A DNA stretch of 64,000 bases from Bugula neritina (Eukaryota > Animalia > Bryozoa). The position numbers were made by a program, and so were the translations under genes. Location of the stretch: contig OZ037765.1 in assembly GCA_964035545.1 (NCBI GenBank), forward strand, positions 24,737,504 to 24,801,503, written 5' to 3'. How positions within the stretch are numbered: the stretch's first letter is position 1; each line of letters starts with the position of its first letter. A model generated the notes under the pieces. The model was not told the DNA's origin. It saw nothing but the letters and a program-made list of their open reading frames with translations, and ran no database searches. Shown here piece by piece: positions 23,501 through 50,223 of this stretch.

Positions 23501-25067
23501 TAAATAATGCATTTATGCTTTCTTGCAGCAAAGCCGGAGTTACTAACTCCCTAGATGGGCACAATGGCCCAGTCACTGGTATTGATACCCACTGTGTACA
23601 AGGTGCTGTAGACTTCTCCCACTTATATTTGACATCATCTTTTGATTGGACAGTCAAGCTTTGGAGTACCAGGGTGAGCTTTGCCACACTTTCTTGCTAC
23701 TACAATACTACAACTAGGTGTGCTTTTTATATTACTAGTACTTTGTATATTACCTGTACTAAGTATACTACTGCTTTTTGACTATCACTAATAGCATTAA
23801 AGTGCTTGTAGTAATAGCATAATGGCGGAATAGTTAACAGTATTAAATGCTGTAACAGTGATTGTCACTTAGAGCTGACCATTAGTATATTGCTTATTAC
23901 AGTACAGCTACTCTTACTCACGTGAACTTTTTAGCTTCTAATTCATTTCTAACATTAAAAGCTGACAATTCATTAAAGTTGAGAGAGCTGCTGACATTTG
24001 TGTTTATGTATATAAGTAGTTTTAGCAAGCTTAATATTCAATGAGTCAGCATGGATTTGCTGCCTGTCACTGTATGCGCAAGTGCAATGTTTTAGAATGA
24101 CCATGAGCTGTACACATTCAAGGATGGTACTGAGTATATGATGGACGTAAGGTGGTCCCCTATTCACCCTGCACTCTTTGCTTGTGTGGACGGAAGTGGC
24201 AAGCTGTCACTGTGGAATCTAAATAATGACACTGAGGTAGGATGAAGATGTTATAACTAAAAACATAATTTTATCTGAACACTGGTGAAGTAGAATTTTA
24301 ATGGTACCAGATGTAGCTGGTGTGGCTATACTATTATGAAAGAGCACTGTCTTTTTACTTTGCTTTGGATTTGCCAATAGTTTTTTTATACCAGTTTTAC
24401 ATGTATGTGATTGAATATGTAAGTTTTCTCTCGATGCTCAGGTTAAATTAGCAATACAGTCAAAAACATCTCCCACCCATATGCAAGCATAATAAAACAC
24501 AAACACGAAATCTATGAAATTTTTTTGATGTCTCTTTGATCTTGTGAAATTATCTCTGCTCTACTCCCAAAGTAGTTACAAGTTGTTGACATTTCAGGTG
24601 CCGACTACTAGCACTGTGCCAGACATGCAAGCAGCTCTCAACAAGTGCAAGTGGCACGGTAATGGTTCACAGCTGGCTGCTGGTGGCAACAATGGAAAGA
24701 TTTACCTCTATGACGTGTCTGAGGTTAGATAATGATATAACACCATTAATACTGGTTAAACTGTTCAGTATGTTCAGTCTACAGTCATAGTGTTTTGCTT
24801 TAAAATGTTAATATATTAATTTGATATTGTGTACATATAGTTTATTTTTGATAGTGACTTATATTTCTGCATACGAAGTTGTGTTTAGCAAGTCTGCTTT
24901 TAGGAGCAACTTATATTATTGTTGATGAAGTCTTTTGGCTTGCTCATTTATAGAAGCTGGCAAATCCCAAGCTAGATGAGTGGAACAAGTTTGCCCACAA
25001 TCTGCTGGAGATGCAGTCTGAGTCAGCCGATCTGGACATGTCTGGTGTTGGTGCTCCTCTCAGATGA
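17571..25067 (+). CDS. DYNC1I: Cytoplasmic dynein 1 intermediate chain (N-terminal coiled coil, light-chain sites, WD40 repeats), multi-exon with alternative exons
   Basis: [29 protein letters not shown]; [20 protein letters not shown] (Tctex/LC8 sites); [31 protein letters not shown]; WD repeats ([44 protein letters not shown]|[31 protein letters not shown]); stop TGA 25065-25067. Confidence 0.96.
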
Positions 25068-25640
25068 CTCATCTAATCAACCATTCTGTTCAACATGAAG
25101 AGCAAAAGCTTGCATACAGACATTGTTTTGCTTGAGTCAATTTATTTCTGTATTCATGCTTTTTAGAATTTTTGTAATGCTATATCTAACTAAAGTTTGG
25201 TGGTGTTGCTCTTTTCTATATTCGCCCTTTACATTTGTAGTCAAAAATGTTATGTTATTTATTACAAGAAGAATATATCAAAAACTTGTGAACATTTTGG
25301 TGATTTAATAAGTTGCATATATTTCTACATATTTATTACAATTGTAAAATGTACATTAGTTTTTAGTTTTAAGTAATAGTGTGTTGCCGTACTTATTTGC
25401 TAGATAAGTACTCATGGAGATAGCAAGCACCAAGCGGTACTATAGGTACACATGGGATGTAGAACACATAACTTGTGTGTTTTGACAATCTTGTCAAATT
25501 AACATCTCATTGCAATAGCATAGCATTACAAGGTAGCTTGCTGAGCCAGTCAGTTGGATAATTTTTGCTCCAGACCATTCGCAGTGAAAGCATAAGTTAC
25601 AAACAAATAGTGCAAATTTGAGTAGTAACCAGAACGTAGT

Positions 25641-28600
25641 ATGGCTACGATCAAATGCTTCTGTAACATCTGTGGTAAGGGAGAGAATTCGATCTGCACA
25701 TCTGATTATATGGTTGGTTCCAATATTACTTGGCTAAGTTAATAATGTTATATTATTTGCATTTATATCAAAGTTGTGTTGTATCATTTACAGCTGAATA
25801 ATGTGCTCAAGTCTAAATAGTGTCCAACTTAATGAAATTATGCTTCTCTAAAAGTAAAATCAAATAAATTGGTGTGATGTAAAGGGACTCATGGGTTTAT
25901 AAATCAATTTCTGGTTTATAATTTCTTCTATCAAGGGTTGACCTAAAAAAATTTTCTTCAAATTCTCAAGTTGCTAAGATATTTTTCATTATGTTGACTT
26001 TCTGTTCCAGTGTTTAGTTTGGTGGCAAAAAGATAATGGACTGGTAAAAGATTGTGTTTTGAAATCTGAAAAAGAAAGTGATGATAGGTGTAGGTTTGAT
26101 ATGCCGGAACCATCTTTGTGCTGCAACACAACCAAATGCAATGATTTCAACTTGTTGAAACAAAGGTTTTTCTTGGACCGACATGATAGTACGTTATAGT
26201 ATCCATGCAATAACTGCGTATAATTTCCAACTTTAGCTATAATAATGTTTGAAAGACTAAAGTGTTAATGCAAAATCAAAAAAGAAAGTTCTGTACAATA
26301 AACATTTGAAGGAAAAAAATTGACAAAATAGTTAAAGGAACCTTATCTAAGCAATGAATAATATAAGTTATACCATAATGTTTGTTAGATATGTATACTT
26401 TTTATAGTATAATATTGGTTTAGCTTATAAGTTATAGTTTCCAATTTTTTATGGTACTTTTTAGACAAGTCTAATCAGATTTTTGCCTGTACTGCAGCCA
26501 CATTGGTAGCTTTGCTCATACTTTTGATAATGATGGCATACATCCGTAGACTGCGTCAAAACAGATACAAGAGAAAAAATCTGTTGGCTACGGTGAGGTG
26601 GTGCAAAACATGTCATTCCTAATGTTACATGAAAGTGAAAAATTAACAATATTTTGTTTTAACAAAATCTGTTGAGAGTTATTTCTGATGCCATTTTATT
26701 GAACTTGAGTTTTTAAGACTTGATTTTGTGTTTAGATTTAAAACACACCTTTTTAACTTATATTGGATAACAGATTTGATTTTATAGTTTATAGGTTTGT
26801 ACAATTTTTCCTGCACACAGCAGCATAATAATATACTTGCTGTTGAATAATTTATTTTAGATAGAGGGAAACATTAGTAGTGGTAGAAGAAGCCGAATAT
26901 TAGTGGAGAGAACAACTGTGAATGATGTTAGACTTATTGCAGCTATTGGTAAACTATTATTACATATAATATCATAAGCTGTAACATATGCTTTTTATGC
27001 TTCTAACTCTTTTTCCCTTCAACTTCATATGCACTCATACAATCCACTGTCTGTGTAACACTGCAATCCTAACTTATGTATGTAATTCATGTAGGCTGCT
27101 GCTTTCTGTTTGACTGGTGTTAAATTTGGTAGACTTGCCCAAGTAGGTTAATTGTGTAAAATATAAAAAACTTGAAAATTCAAAGAGGCTCTTAAATATT
27201 AAAGCTTACCTGACAAGTATTAAGCAATCATACAATCACATAAGCCACTTGATAGATTCAATACTATTATGATAATGGTGTACATAATTATACATGTGCA
27301 ACAAACATCAATTTGCTTGTTTAACATAAATATAGCCACAGCATGATTCAATAAACCTCCTTAAAGGTGAAGGAAGATTTGGGAAAGTATACCATGCAAC
27401 ATACAAAGGGGACGATGTGGCTGTAAAGATTTTTAGTACCAGAGAAGAGGCTTCATATTCCAGAGAGAATAAAATATATTCACACTGTTTGCTTCACCCA
27501 AACATACTTGGTTTCATCACTTCAGATATAACATGCCGCTCTTCTGTGACTCAATTCTGGCTGATAACATACTACCATCCAAATGGTATGCAAGTCTGCC
27601 CAACTACTTACAATTATAACTTTGCTTCACACTGAGGCTATTACCATTTGTAATTTATAATTATATTAGGCTATAGTGTTTCATATATTATGCAACTAAA
27701 TGTTAATGGGCCACCATTTTGAAAACTATATAACCTAGGCTATATAATTGTGATAAGTAAATTTAATTATAGCTAGGATATCAACAGTCATCTGATGTCA
27801 ATAATTCAACAAGTCAATAAATTGACCTGACCATTGAAATATTCATTACTTTCTAATTAACTTATACTTATACAGTAGGTATATAAATATTTATTTCAAT
27901 TTTTGGAAATAATTATGTCTATAGCGAAAGTTAAAATACATGTAGTTTACCACTTGCAGGTTCGCTCTACGACTTTCTAAACATACATAAGCCAATAGAA
28001 CTCAATAAAGCTTTGAATATGCTGAGGACAGCTGCCAATGGAGTGAACTATCTTCACCTTAGCATAAACGGTGCTTCTCATGGCAGCAAACATAGACTGT
28101 GGCAGCCAGGGAAACCAAGCATAGCCCATCGTGATATCAAGGTTTGCTTATAAAAACAACTTTTAGCTTAACATAGCTAGTGGTATGTAAGTGACTAGTT
28201 TAAAAACAGTTTGAGATAATATCCGTATATGCGTGTGTAGCTGTGTTGAAAATATTAGTTTGTTTTGTTTTGATATGAATAATGTAGTAACAAATTTTTT
28301 TTCTCATTTATTTATCTCCGATGAAATTACTAGCCCATAAAGAATATTCATATTATGTATATAAAGTCACAAAGTTTGCAACTTGACAATTTTGTAGACA
28401 AAAAATATTCTGGTTAAGCTTGATGGGACATGTTGTATATCTGATTTTGGACTTGCTACAACTCAGCAGGATTTGGATAACTCAAGGATGGACGCATATG
28501 AAATCAGGGTATTTACATTGTGAACCTTTTTCTAATGTGGCTAATTTACTAGAAAATAAATACTGAACTAACCGTATTTAATTGTCATTTCTTCAGATAG

Positions 28601-30033
28601 AAAAATTCTATTTTTCGATTATTTATTCAAAATATGTTATCAACTTCCAACATTTGTTGCTTGTATTTATGAAGGCTGGCACTAAAAGATATTTGGCTCC
28701 AGAAAACTTAGATTTGACAATAAATAGCAAGCATATTGAAAGTTTCATGAATGCTGATGTGTACTCCTTTGGGCTGGTTATTTGGGAGACAATACAAAAT
28801 AGCCAAGGTGGTAAGTTATAAACTAATATAAGTATTGTATCTATATATAGATTCAATGTTACCTGTAACGATTTATTTGACCAATAATTTTTAAGACTCA
28901 CAAATTAAGTTGCCTGAGATGCACTATTATAGCAACTTTAACTATACACATAAACAGCATGCATCTAATTTCTATGCTTTTGTGTCAGGAGACAACTACC
29001 ATATACCTTATGAAGGGCTGGTGCCAAAGAGTCCTTCATTCACAGACATGGAGAATATTGTCTCGGCGCAGAAAATAAGACCATCTACTAGGGTAATCTC
29101 ACAATATTAGATGCACAATTTATTACTTTGATTTTAGTAAATGTATTTTTACGCATTTTGACTTAGACATTTACAATGGTATCATGTGCTGTGGTAGACT
29201 TAGTTTGCATCCATGCCCATTTACAATCTGTTGAAAACTAAATGTTCTTCATAATCAGCAGTAAAACACTTTTGAATCAACAGTTTTGGCACAGCAAAAG
29301 ATGGCTTACAAAGTTGTTACATTATTAAAAGTTTTTAACTATGTCGTTTAACATGAATGTTGACTTTCATTAGATATATTGCATTTACTTTAGAAATTAT
29401 TTGAAGATAATATCATTTGCAAAAAATTATTTGTAACATTTACAAACAATATGCATCGGTCAATTTGTAGTATTAAGAGCATTTCATAAAATAAAACCAA
29501 CATTATGTTAAAATAGGCTAACTATTTATCAAGTTAACAATAGATGGGTTTAAAAGTTCAATTTAATTCTGCGTGCAATTATTTGCTTCTAGAGAGTTTT
29601 GGCTGTTACCAATCTACACCCTCAACTTCAACTAACTTTTTCTACCTTTGGTCAAATGCTTTTTGTCAATGCATGCTTAGAAAAACACTATATTATGTGT
29701 GTTTGACCTAAATGGCCATTTATTAGACAAGATAGAGCAATCCTTGAAGTTGAAAATTTTAATATCACCAATTAAATTCTTTAGACTGTGCACATACTGC
29801 TGATATGCGTTCTAAACTGTGTAATATAATACTGCATACACTTATTACTGTTGTTCTATACATAGTTTGAAGGCATAACTAATGAAAATCTGAAGGAAAA
29901 AGTTAAAGCTCTTTTAAAAGAAACTTGGTGTTCTAAACCGACCTCAAGAATTACAATGCTCCGTTTACTAAAGAATATTGAAACTATGCAGAAGTGCGTT
30001 GTTGACCAGAACTTTGCCAAGCTGCCTAATTAA
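25641..30033 (+). CDS. Divergent TGF-beta superfamily type I receptor Ser/Thr kinase, ALK1/ALK2 (ACVR1/Saxophone)-like
   Basis: Exons about 25633/25641-25712, 26011-26188, 26465-26592, 26861-26948, 27367-27585, 27960-28141, 28398-28508, 28675-28810, 28989-29092, 29866-30033. Ten-Cys ectodomain ending CCNTTKCN; TM IFACTAATLVALLILLIMMAYI; kinase GEGRFGKV, VAVKIFSTREE, L45 loop TSDITCRSSVTQ (ALK1/2 type), HRDIKTKNIL, DFG, GTKRYLAPE. Signal-peptide exon not identified. Confidence 0.9.
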
Positions 30034-30100
30034 CAGTGCCCTCAGGTTCCTATGTGATACTTGAAGGCCATCAGATAGAGAGTTGCATGTACTCATTGTA

Positions 30101-30276
30101 TGGAGTGCCAAATGGTTAAGAAATAAACCTAAGAGCATGAATAATGAGGATATGCGAGCAAATTAAAGACCTATGAAAGCGTTTTGTGAGCTTATGAGAA
30201 AGAATAATGGCTAGATACTTTATTGTGAGCATATGATACGCAATAATAAGTGAATTTTTGACCATTTGGCACTCCA
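30101..30276. mobile_element. Small MITE (Tc1/mariner-type TA TSD), 176 bp, just after the receptor stop codon
   Basis: TIRs tggagtgccaaatggttaagaaat / atttttgaccatttggcactcca flanked by TA at 30099-30100 and 30277-30278; internal degenerate gagcatatga-like repeats. Confidence 0.75.
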
Positions 30277-30316
30277 TATGCATTGTATGTACTGTATGTA
30301 GGCTAGATGCATTGAT

Positions 30317-30410
30317 TAGCCCCAGTAAGCTATGTGTAGCCCTAGTAAGTGATGTATAGCCCTAGTAAGATATGTGTAGCCCTAGTAAGATATGTATAGC
30401 CCTAGTAAGC
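30317..30410. repeat. 20-bp minisatellite (tagccctagtaagatatgtg), about 4.7 copies
   Basis: Direct tandem units visible in sequence. Confidence 0.9.
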
Positions 30411-31117
30411 CGACAGCACTCTCAACTCGCTGTATAGCTGGGAGTTGCAATAATGTATTATATTACAGAAATATTACTCAATATTTAAATAGTATGGTTA
30501 TATAGGTACTATGTACATTTTATGTGCTAATTCATTTTCTACTCTTTTTTCTCTTGTTAAATCTTTTTATTTTCACAAGCTACAAATATTATTATTACCT
30601 ATATAATATATGCAGTCACTTTTAAGCTTGCAGAAACTTGATGGCAATTTATAAGTTCATGAGTATTAAATATCTTATGAAATTATGCTACAATAACCAT
30701 ATAAGTCGTAACTTTTGACCCTATCAAGATGTGTCCCTAAAAGTTAGATCCTGTTAACAATGATGATTTTCTTTTAGCAATTTCTTATCAATTTTAACAA
30801 TAAACTCCTTGATTTTTAAACATAATTGCTTAGTCACATGACGCACAAAGATCAAAATTAAATAATTTACAAAATTATATTACAGTAATAACCACATAGC
30901 AAAAATATTTGATAATCCCACAGTTATCTGTGTGCACTCCCTAAGCTGAAGCTTACATGCTTATATTAGCGGTATTACATAACTCAACTTGCTGATTAGG
31001 CAGCCATAGGTAGACATATGAGAAATAAAAAATGTCACGATGTATTTAAGTTTAATAGATCTCAGTAATCCTCTGTAGTCTCACTTGCGGTCAGTGTAGT
31101 AATGAGTTTACCCAGTG

Positions 31118-47552: not shown

Positions 47553-48956
47553 ATTTCCTGCAACAGACGAGGCACACCGGACGATGTCACTCTAAGCTCA
47601 GTTTAAATCAGCTGCAGAAGAAAATACCCAATATAGAAAAAGTACAATCAATTCACATTTAGATTGTATTTGAGTAGATGTAATATAATAGCATGAACTA
47701 TCAATTTGTTTATAACCTCAATGCCAATAAATTTTAAGAATAGAATAATGTACAAAAAATTCTTTTAATCATAATGGTGATAATAGAAAGCTACAAATGA
47801 CATCAACATAAAACATTGTAAATAAAAACAGAAACTAAGCAAACTAGTGAAAAGAGTAAATATTTCATGTGTCCTTTGGAGTTGCATAGAGGAATGAAGT
47901 GATTTAGGAGATGAGGCAGTGGAAGTATTATCAGATGCCCATCCTAAGATGGACTAATATGAAAGTTAAATGCTTGACATATAAATAACACACAATAAGT
48001 GACTCGTGCCATTACAGTCAATTAAACCTGCAGCTGCAGTGATACACTTAAAATTGATGCTTGCAACCTGCAAACAGATGTTAAGTTAAAGGCAAATCTG
48101 CTTAAAGCCGCATTTACACAACTTTGATCACTTGCACCTACCAAATCATTTGCTTTGGCCTTACAAAATATGACTTTAAAAAACCTAATATTCTATTAAT
48201 TTACCCTAAAGGCTTAATAATAAATTGACACTGATCTTGCTGCAACTTTAAGTTTCTTATAATAGAGTTTTTGTTTTATATTATATACAGAAGTACACAA
48301 CTCCATCGCAACTAAATATGACGCAATGAATTTAGGAGAAATGAGCTAATGGAGCTTGACACAAAACAAAAATTAGTCTATAGCAGTCAGCAACATATTA
48401 AAACATTGTCACAAGTAATTTGAACATGAAATGTTTAGTGCCGGAACCTTTACATCGCAAATATCAACTGCAAGATTAGGCGAATTTTTAATATTAAAGT
48501 ATTTGATGATTCGTTACTTTGTCAGTAAAATGAGTTTAATGTCAACATGAATATAGCTAAAACTTCAGGTATTTTACTTATGCTCTGCAAATTTTAAATC
48601 AATACCATTGTTAAAACTTAAACAAACATTATGATTATCAAACATAAATGTATGCCCGCCCCCTCCTAGACTCGAGTGATCCAGAAACAAGTGCAATCAC
48701 ATTACCATACTGATACTTCACTGATACTGCAACCTAAATCTATCACTATGACTATGAATGATGAGCAGTATTACTATAAGCATTGAGCATAGCCATATGC
48801 GTAATACCAACACTATTTCAGTATTTGAGTAACACTAATAGTAATAGAAATACTAATAGTAATAGTAATACTATGAGTTTGTATAATACTAATAGTAATA
48901 TAAATGTTGAGCAGTCATTACTCTTACTGATACTTATAGTCCTACTCATACTGTTA

Positions 48957-50223
48957 ACTCAGCTGTGCTCAACATACCATGACATTGCCAAAGCGCACGA
49001 CCAATCACAAGACACACATGCAATTGTTCTAGACTTTAAAAAAGCATTTGACAAAGTCCCCCATTCCCTACTGCTACTGAAACTACGTCGCATTCCAGAA
49101 GTTAACCCACAGATTATAAATTGGATTCAAGATTTCATCACCAACAGAAAACAGAGAGTTGTAATCAAAGGCTCATGCTCAACTGAGCTCCCAGTAACAT
49201 CGGGCGTCCCCCAAGGATCTGTACTAGGACCCACACTATTCTTGGTTTATATTAACGATTTACCAAGTTATGTCAATTGTTGTGTCAGTCTTTATGCAGA
49301 TGACACCCTGTTGTACCAAAGAGTAAACTCAGAAGCAGATGCTGCAGACTTCCAGGTCAATATCGATGCAGTATATAACTGGTCCCAACAGTGGAAGATG
49401 CCTTTTAATGAAAGTAAATGCCATGCTATATCATTTGGTCGCCAAACAAGCCTTCCATCTTATAGGCTTGGGAGTACACCTGTCCAATGGACTGAAGAGA
49501 CCAAGTATCTCGGTGTGACCATGCAGAGTAATCTAAAATTTGACAAACACATTGTGCTGAAATCACAAAAAGCTAGCAGAGTCCTAGGAGCAATAAAGTT
49601 TGCTCTCCATGATGCTCCAAAAAATGGCAAACTCTTGGCTTACACCAGCCTCTGCCGTCTATTGTTGGAGTATGCAGATACCCTCTGGGATCCTTATTTA
49701 AAAACCACCATACATAATATAGAAATGGTTCAGAATCGTGCTGTGAGGTTCATATCAGGTCTCAAGGGGCGAGAGAGTGTTAGTGACGCTCGATGCGAAC
49801 TGGGTCTACTACCATTGCAAACGAGGCGTAAAAATCATAGACTCACACTATTGACACGTATTCTACAGTCTGAAGCCACGCACAGTACACTTTCATCAGA
49901 CTATGATGAGGTTGTGGAAAATCGCTCTCTCATGTCCGTAACTACGAGATCAGCAACCCAAGGTTTACCCAACTCCATTTCTTCTCACTCTAGCTGTTAC
50001 CATCAAAGTTTCTTACCAAGAACGATACGCGACATGAGAGGATTTACCTAGCTTTCCTATCAATTTTCTTTTTAAACATCACTATCTAAATTGAATAATA
50101 TCAGCGGTAATGCGGAAGCACTAAAAAAAAAAACGGAACACTCACCGTCACACACATGAGGCGCTCTACTAACGTCATATGATGGTCAAGAGCGTTCTAC
50201 CTCATCAGAGGTAATCAGAGGTA
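48957..50223 (+). mobile_element. 5'-truncated non-LTR retrotransposon (CR1/L2-group LINE) with uninterrupted RT C-terminal ORF
   Basis: Starts at TQL (of the CETQL motif); LDFKKAFDKVPH, SGVPQGSVLGPTLFLVYINDL, YADD, KYLGV; stop at 50051; 3' UTR stem-loop (cgctct/agagcg); tail (ATCAGAGGTA)2; 7-bp TSD ACTGTTA at 48950-48956 and 50224-50230. Confidence 0.93.

Follow-up and report, generated by a model that had tools for sequence, protein, structure and literature searches.

Does the type I TGF-beta receptor gene found in the genome of the bryozoan Bugula neritina encode a kinase that evolution has switched on? The window, i.e. the whole stretch of 64,000 nucleotides that was analysed (contig OZ037765.1, positions 24,737,504 to 24,801,503 of the forward strand), contains an exon for which the initial annotation had read an aspartate at the position equivalent to Gln207 of ALK2, the position of the engineered Q207D allele, next to a destroyed GS box and FKBP12 site. 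From this it had proposed a Smad1/5 kinase largely independent of GS phosphorylation and possibly of ligand or type II receptor. The translation of the exon (26861-26948) and the GAT codon encoding the Asp (codon 22 of the exon, 26924-26926) are as claimed there, and the following analysis asks how much of the functional proposal can be built on them.

The receptor gene is described by a ten-exon model on the plus strand (25641-30033) having GT-AG introns and an open frame of 461 amino acids. Residues are given in ALK2 numbering, transferred via a vertebrate ALK1/2 protein aligned at G215 and checked on the ACVR1 chain. Beginning at the first ATG, exon 1 (25641-25712) encodes ectodomain cysteines 1-4, exon 2 (26011-26188) the remaining ectodomain with a CC-x4-CN box, bringing the cysteines to a total of ten, and exon 3 (26465-26592) the transmembrane helix and a short basic juxtamembrane segment. 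Exon 4 (26861-26948) carries a degenerate GS loop (SSGRRS), helix GS2 with T203, N206 and D207, and strand beta1, followed by exon 5 (27367-27585) with the Gly-rich loop, VAVK, helix alphaC containing W245Y and E250K, a deletion of R258, an L45 loop of the ALK1/2 type and the hinge. The rest of the kinase is distributed over exon 6 (27960-28141; alphaD-alphaE, a 10-residue insertion before G328, HRD), exon 7 (28398-28508; catalytic-loop Asn, DFG, activation segment with R375 retained), exon 8 (28675-28810; GTKRY, APE, alphaF), exon 9 (28989-29092; alphaF-alphaG region) and exon 10 (29866-30033; alphaH-alphaI, the NANDOR-box residues R485, R490 and K493, stop codon). Each exon was searched separately against the databases, and the spliced model assembled from window coordinates was used for alignments and trees.

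Spliced reads confirm this model over most of its length. Contigs from run X1 (library RNA-Seq, presumed to be RNA; from a lineage diverged by ~5% from the window in exons) contain joints for all introns from exon 2 through exon 10, including 26592>26861 and 26948>27367. An alternative or skipped GS exon is ruled out, as exon 3 is joined directly to exon 4 and exon 4 directly to exon 5, and because these joints flank exon 4 on both sides a normal GS box cannot come from another exon. The read-run comparison used 5,401 letters. Run X2 covers 26314-26995 ungapped, the GS exon included, making an assembly error at this exon unlikely. The frame is free of stops and frameshifts and is spliced in X1, so that the gene lacks the marks of a pseudogene.

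The 5' end is less firmly established. The joint between exons 1 and 2 (25712>26011) was deduced from the cysteine pattern and from an intron that the ALK1/2 paralog has at the corresponding position, and was not seen among the X1 spliced contigs; the joint between exons 2 and 3, near 26184>26465, has a depth of 2.5 in X1 compared to 9-15 for the joints downstream. The ATG at 25641 is not followed by a signal peptide and is preceded by an in-frame stop at 25626; the many candidates upstream are at chance level, and an upstream signal-peptide exon, though none was found, is possible. Exons 1-2 are covered by an unspliced X1 contig (25100-26171, depth 119.5), which likely belongs to the 3' UTR (25067-26171) of the cytoplasmic dynein intermediate chain gene lying upstream on the same strand as the receptor. 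Comparing X1 with the window, 34/651 bases differ in exon pieces without gaps and 33/379 in intron pieces, where 11 gap letters also occur (Fisher p=0.036), which gives an exon divergence between the lineages of ~0.6 of that in introns; as a measure of selection this is rough, and the pieces possibly derive from more than one haplotype. Two synonymous and two replacement changes fall into exon 1. Taken at face value, the exon-intron comparison indicates constraint, yet less than expected for a conserved kinase.

Several repeats lie in and around the gene. Intron 9 harbours a 158-nt high-copy element (29596-29754) with 288 candidates genome-wide, the 40 scored being 95-99% identical; it is absent from run X2, pointing to a young, polymorphic insertion family. 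Just past the receptor stop codon, a MITE-like element with 23-nt terminal inverted repeats (30100-30277) is followed by a 20-nt tandem repeat (30317-30416). The segment 31118-31190 looks tRNA-like by eye, has no ARAGORN call and is possibly a tRNA-derived SINE, and a reverse-transcriptase-like ORF of 422 aa (48783-50051) represents a LINE fragment by motif.

Descent from the ALK1/2 group is supported by several lines of evidence. The closest solved relatives in the PDB are ALK1 and ALK2, and type I receptors match at ~1e-20 compared to ~1e-7 for type II receptors, placing the kinase outside the type II clade. The initial annotation had called for a kinase tree; built from the kinase domain only, it places the receptor inside the starred spiralian ALK1/2 group (98/97), and a second tree puts it on the same side. 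The B. neritina ALK1/2 gene appears as a weakly supported sister (79/43), to be read with a long-branch warning since the branch of the window receptor measures 1.84 compared to a median of 0.24. Both genes share introns after IG of strand beta1, after HRDIK and before GTKRY, three positions at which the ALK3/6 and ALK4/5/7 paralogs have none. Kinase identity amounts to 42-45% to the B. neritina paralogs, the divergence therefore being either deep or very fast, and to about 42-48% to any receptor. By this placement and the shared introns, the gene is best described as an old, fast-evolving ALK1/2 duplicate of the bryozoan lineage and, by descent, an ALK1/2 paralog.

Searching assembly tzBugNeri2.1 (PMC11480708; 216,009,554 bases, 321 contigs) revealed the canonical ALK1/2 gene (C2:19.21 Mb) for which the initial annotation had asked, as well as ALK3/6 (C1:18.20 Mb) and ALK4/5/7 (C1:3.65 Mb) genes, all three having recognisable GS boxes, which makes the gene in the window a fourth, additional one derived from type I receptors. 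Unusual residues mark even the canonical B. neritina ALK1/2, namely Ser207, Ala328, Met375, the gatekeeper Cys283 and Lys198. A recent second copy of the window receptor gene is absent from the genome. Searches for orthologues in other bryozoans by exon, among 50% representatives, in metagenome contigs and with a related ALK1/2 query, all weak approaches for a spliced and diverged gene, returned none. The genome further contains four Smad loci, a BAMBI-like locus at C4:4476518, ~14 TGF-beta ligand loci including tandem clusters of three, two and three (C4:20.92-20.95 Mb, C5:5.92-5.93 Mb, C7:2.96 Mb), and three type II receptor genes, i.e. BMPR2-like, ACVR2-like and a diverged third (C5:13.097 Mb), the last being a candidate partner of the diverged type I receptor.

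The register of the GS exon is secure for its C-terminal half. Counting back from the adjacent Gly-rich loop puts the Asp at ALK2 position 207, and against 105 natural GS blocks residues 198-214 outscore shuffles (p=0.00015), fixing the register and upholding the Asp at the Q207 equivalent. The loop at 189-197, by contrast with the ALK1/2 paralog, scores -7.8 vs 31.8, and only four natural blocks, which are probable mis-predictions, do not score above it. PF08515 (GS domain) has no match in exon 4 or at the locus in the genome scan, a scan in which the ALK4/5/7 gene, with an intron interrupting its box, likewise went undetected. The SGSGSG loop of canonical type I receptors is absent and helix GS2 is recognisable. 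The alignment to ACVR1, initially described as gap-free, holds for 198-214; within the loop, MAFFT favours a 2-residue gap by which SSGRRS places Ser at 189, 190 and 194, i.e. three of the four canonical sites, whereas the ungapped register retains S192 alone and loses T189, S190 and S194. Pairwise scores do not decide between the two, and the loop register is ambiguous. This matters because in zebrafish T189 with either S190 or S192 is enough for wild-type ACVR1 signalling (bioRxiv 10.1101/2022.12.01.518722). Three serines remain in the loop, and in neither register does an intact phosphorylatable GS loop stand behind Asp207. The 20 residues preceding position 198 carry a net charge of +5 compared to 0 to -4 in relatives, and only 48 residues separate the transmembrane helix from the Gly-rich loop compared to 67-77, the juxtamembrane segment being ~20 residues shorter and helix GS1 shortened. 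Used alone as a query, the GS exon found no matches in atlas, PDB or BLAST searches.

How these changes would act can be read from the ALK2-FKBP12 structure, in which R258 buries the GS loop, R206 and R202 bond D269, Q207 bonds Glu55 of FKBP12, and R258, R206, Q207, L196 and G328 stabilise the inactive state (PMC3481300). In the Bugula receptor L196, P197, A205, R206, Q207 and W245 are lost or changed, E250 is replaced by Lys, R258 is deleted, the gap being visible against both ALK1 and ALK2, and the 10-residue insertion sits immediately before G328. Among 117 conserved ALK1/2 proteins A205, W245 and E250 show no variation and 116 have R258, and the residues T204 and V205 of the Bugula receptor occur in none of the 105 natural receptors. 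The loss of autoinhibition proposed initially is well supported and even extended by the R258 deletion, the short GS1/juxtamembrane region and the insertion beside G328; judged from the structure, autoinhibition is very probably weakened. The FKBP12 site fared less well as a claim: L196/P197 are indeed lost, while the residues filling the FKBP12 pocket are F198-L199 rather than L196-P197 (PMC3481300), and this pair persists as Ile-Leu, for which destroyed is too strong a word.

The catalytic residues K235, E248, D336, K338, N341, D354, the APE Glu and R485 are all present in the alignment, and the VAVK Lys, alphaC Glu, HRD, DFG and APE motifs as well as the ALK1/2-type L45 loop are intact, as had been stated. 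L199, V200, R202, T203, D269, G328, R375, R485, R490 and K493 are retained. K493 is the hot spot of the C-lobe patch that docks ALK2 on BMPR2 (PMC8368100), and the type II docking patch R485/R490/K493 is conserved. The ten ectodomain cysteines align with those of ALK1/2 proteins, and the CC-x-CN box and a single transmembrane helix are present, although the exon-by-exon search gave no Pfam match for the ectodomain. E250 belongs to a modelled interface presenting the GS loop to the type II receptor, an acidic residue whose charge is reversed by E250K. Two further candidates were dropped: the DFG motif (instead of DLG) as a type II-like feature, being common among invertebrate type I receptors, and F246S as a special loss, the position being variable.

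The weight of Asp207 depends on the comparison chosen. Conserved ALK1/2 proteins have Gln207 in 115/117 cases and Asp in none, and the B. neritina ALK1/2 sister gene has Ser. Among 105 in-register blocks of diverged natural type I receptors, residue 207 is acidic in 17 (Glu in 15, Asp in 2), mostly with intact GS boxes, and Asp207 appears in 5/137 in the gapped alignment. The named examples are from Hydractinia, Macrostomum and Strongyloides, and SMA-6 of C. elegans may also have Asp at the equivalent position. On these counts Asp207 is unusual, though not unique, and by itself no proof of activation. Experiments on ALK2 alleles bear on the question: Q207D is ligand-independent in mammals, yet needs the type II receptor as a scaffold (PMC8368100), and R206H signalling is abolished by loss of type II receptors or of the GS Ser/Thr, while FOP alleles lower the GS site requirement such that T203 can suffice with excess type II (bioRxiv 10.1101/2022.12.01.518722). 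Deleting the GS region yields the ALK2 form with the highest activity in vitro, and yet this form gives no pMad in cells (PMC10376983). The zebrafish equivalent of R206H is not overactive, so that the logic of human alleles does not always transfer. The initially proposed activity without GS phosphorylation, ligand or type II receptor is therefore not supported and was overstated, given that acidic residues at 207 recur with normal GS boxes, that Q207D, FOP mutants and GS-deleted ALK2 behave as described, and that the type II docking patch is conserved.

We tentatively favour, with a confidence somewhat short of even, a model according to which the gene encodes a de-repressed, low-threshold, type II-scaffolded Smad1/5 receptor. 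In this model an ALK1/2 duplicate would have shed parts that hold the kinase off and retained the catalytic and type II-docking parts. The GS loop would no longer be buried, with R258, L196/P197 and R206 gone, the juxtamembrane segment ~20 residues short and an insertion beside G328, and Asp207 would face Glu55 of FKBP12, predicting raised basal kinase activity and weak control by FKBP12. The receptor would still assemble with a type II receptor, and probably with ligand too, through its 10-cysteine ectodomain, and would phosphorylate Smad1/5 at a low threshold via residual acceptors (SSG..S, T203, T204) without the canonical four-site GS switch, behaving like a stacked FOP allele rather than a free-running kinase. 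Against this model, the net charge of +5 in the loop is the reverse of a phospho-mimic and Smad docking may therefore be poor, T204 and V205 may distort helix GS2, and E250K, the absence of an identified signal peptide and the zebrafish result on the R206H equivalent count against it as well.

A receptor that is kinase-active and Smad-poor is a possible reading on the doubtful side. Such a protein would bind ligand and type II receptor and lack the acidic phospho-GS surface, acting as a dominant-negative dampener or trans-phosphorylating ALK1/2 or ALK3/6 partners on their GS box. The Arg-rich loop with its net charge of +5 and E250K fit this, as do the hyperactive GS-deleted ALK2 lacking pMad, the dominant inhibition of the endogenous receptor by GS-site mutants of ACVR1 (bioRxiv 10.1101/2022.12.01.518722) and Drosophila Sax-only complexes, which bind ligand without signalling (PMC10847725), and a canonical ALK1/2 is still there for the ordinary role. 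The core of helix GS2 (L199, V200, R202, T203) and the L45 loop are retained, speaking against a Smad-poor protein, and a pure decoy would not need the full catalytic set; the genome also has a BAMBI-like locus already. We regard it as unlikely that the type I-derived kinase has moved past the GS phospho-switch altogether, providing tonic Smad1/5 phosphorylation set by the site of expression only or serving as a type II-like, always-on trans-activator of sister type I receptors.

Less probable still is a duplicate under relaxed selection or heading for loss, its regulatory changes being drift; the long branch, the missing signal peptide, first exons lying under the transcript of a neighbour, the low X1 depth and an exon divergence that is high for a kinase gene would fit, yet after such deep divergence the frame has no stop or frameshift, all catalytic residues are present and splicing is correct. 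A truly constitutive Smad1/5 kinase, switched on by Asp207 and needing neither GS phosphorylation nor ligand nor type II receptor, is the reading to which we give least credence: the in-register Asp, which in view of Ser207 in the sister could be a phospho-mimic, its absence from conserved ALK1/2 proteins, the stack of FOP-type lesions and the ligand independence of mammalian Q207D speak for it, whereas the recurrence of acidic residues at 207, the type II requirement of Q207D and the intact ectodomain cysteines and docking patch, arguing for continued complex formation, speak against it.

With ALK1/2 receptors (ACVR1, ACVRL1, Saxophone) the Bugula receptor shares the 10-cysteine ectodomain, one transmembrane helix, the L45 type and the position in the tree, and it differs from them in lacking the SGSGSG box, R258 and a signal peptide that could be found, in E250K, in the insertion before G328 and in the short juxtamembrane segment. 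It is not classed as a canonical type I receptor because no GS domain was recognised. Asp207 and the losses of R206, L196/P197 and R258 are shared with caALK2 Q207D, ALK5 T204D and the FOP alleles (R206H, L196P, R258S/G, Q207E), which differ in having an otherwise intact GS loop and needing the type II receptor, whereas the Bugula loop is degenerate and basic; the receptor is not a caALK2 equivalent. Degenerate or partial GS loops likewise occur in Hypsibius exemplaris (OQV23184.1), Strongyloides stercoralis (QWX95781.1) and Macrostomum lignano (PAA93745.1), the latter two also having Glu or Asp at 207 as in the Bugula receptor; we found no functional studies of these three. The Hypsibius and Strongyloides proteins differ from it in belonging to the ALK4/5/7 side and having acidic loops, and are independent cases; judged from sequence, these loops may mimic phosphorylation naturally, and the two receptors are arguably more promising than the Bugula one as candidates for constitutive activity. 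The pseudoreceptor BAMBI has no kinase domain. With it the Bugula protein shares a type I-like ectodomain and a possible decoy role, differing by its complete kinase. Neither the Bugula receptor nor any natural GS-less receptor was the subject of a paper found in our literature search.

Across animals the GS switch hardly varies, and the FOP/DIPG field still argues whether GS phosphorylation only lifts autoinhibition or also recruits Smad. With FOP-like losses stacked on a basic degenerate loop and a canonical sister as a control, the Bugula receptor offers a natural test for separating the two GS roles, and it adds to the extra TGF-beta parts of a colonial, budding animal having four type I receptors, three type II receptors and ~14 ligand loci.
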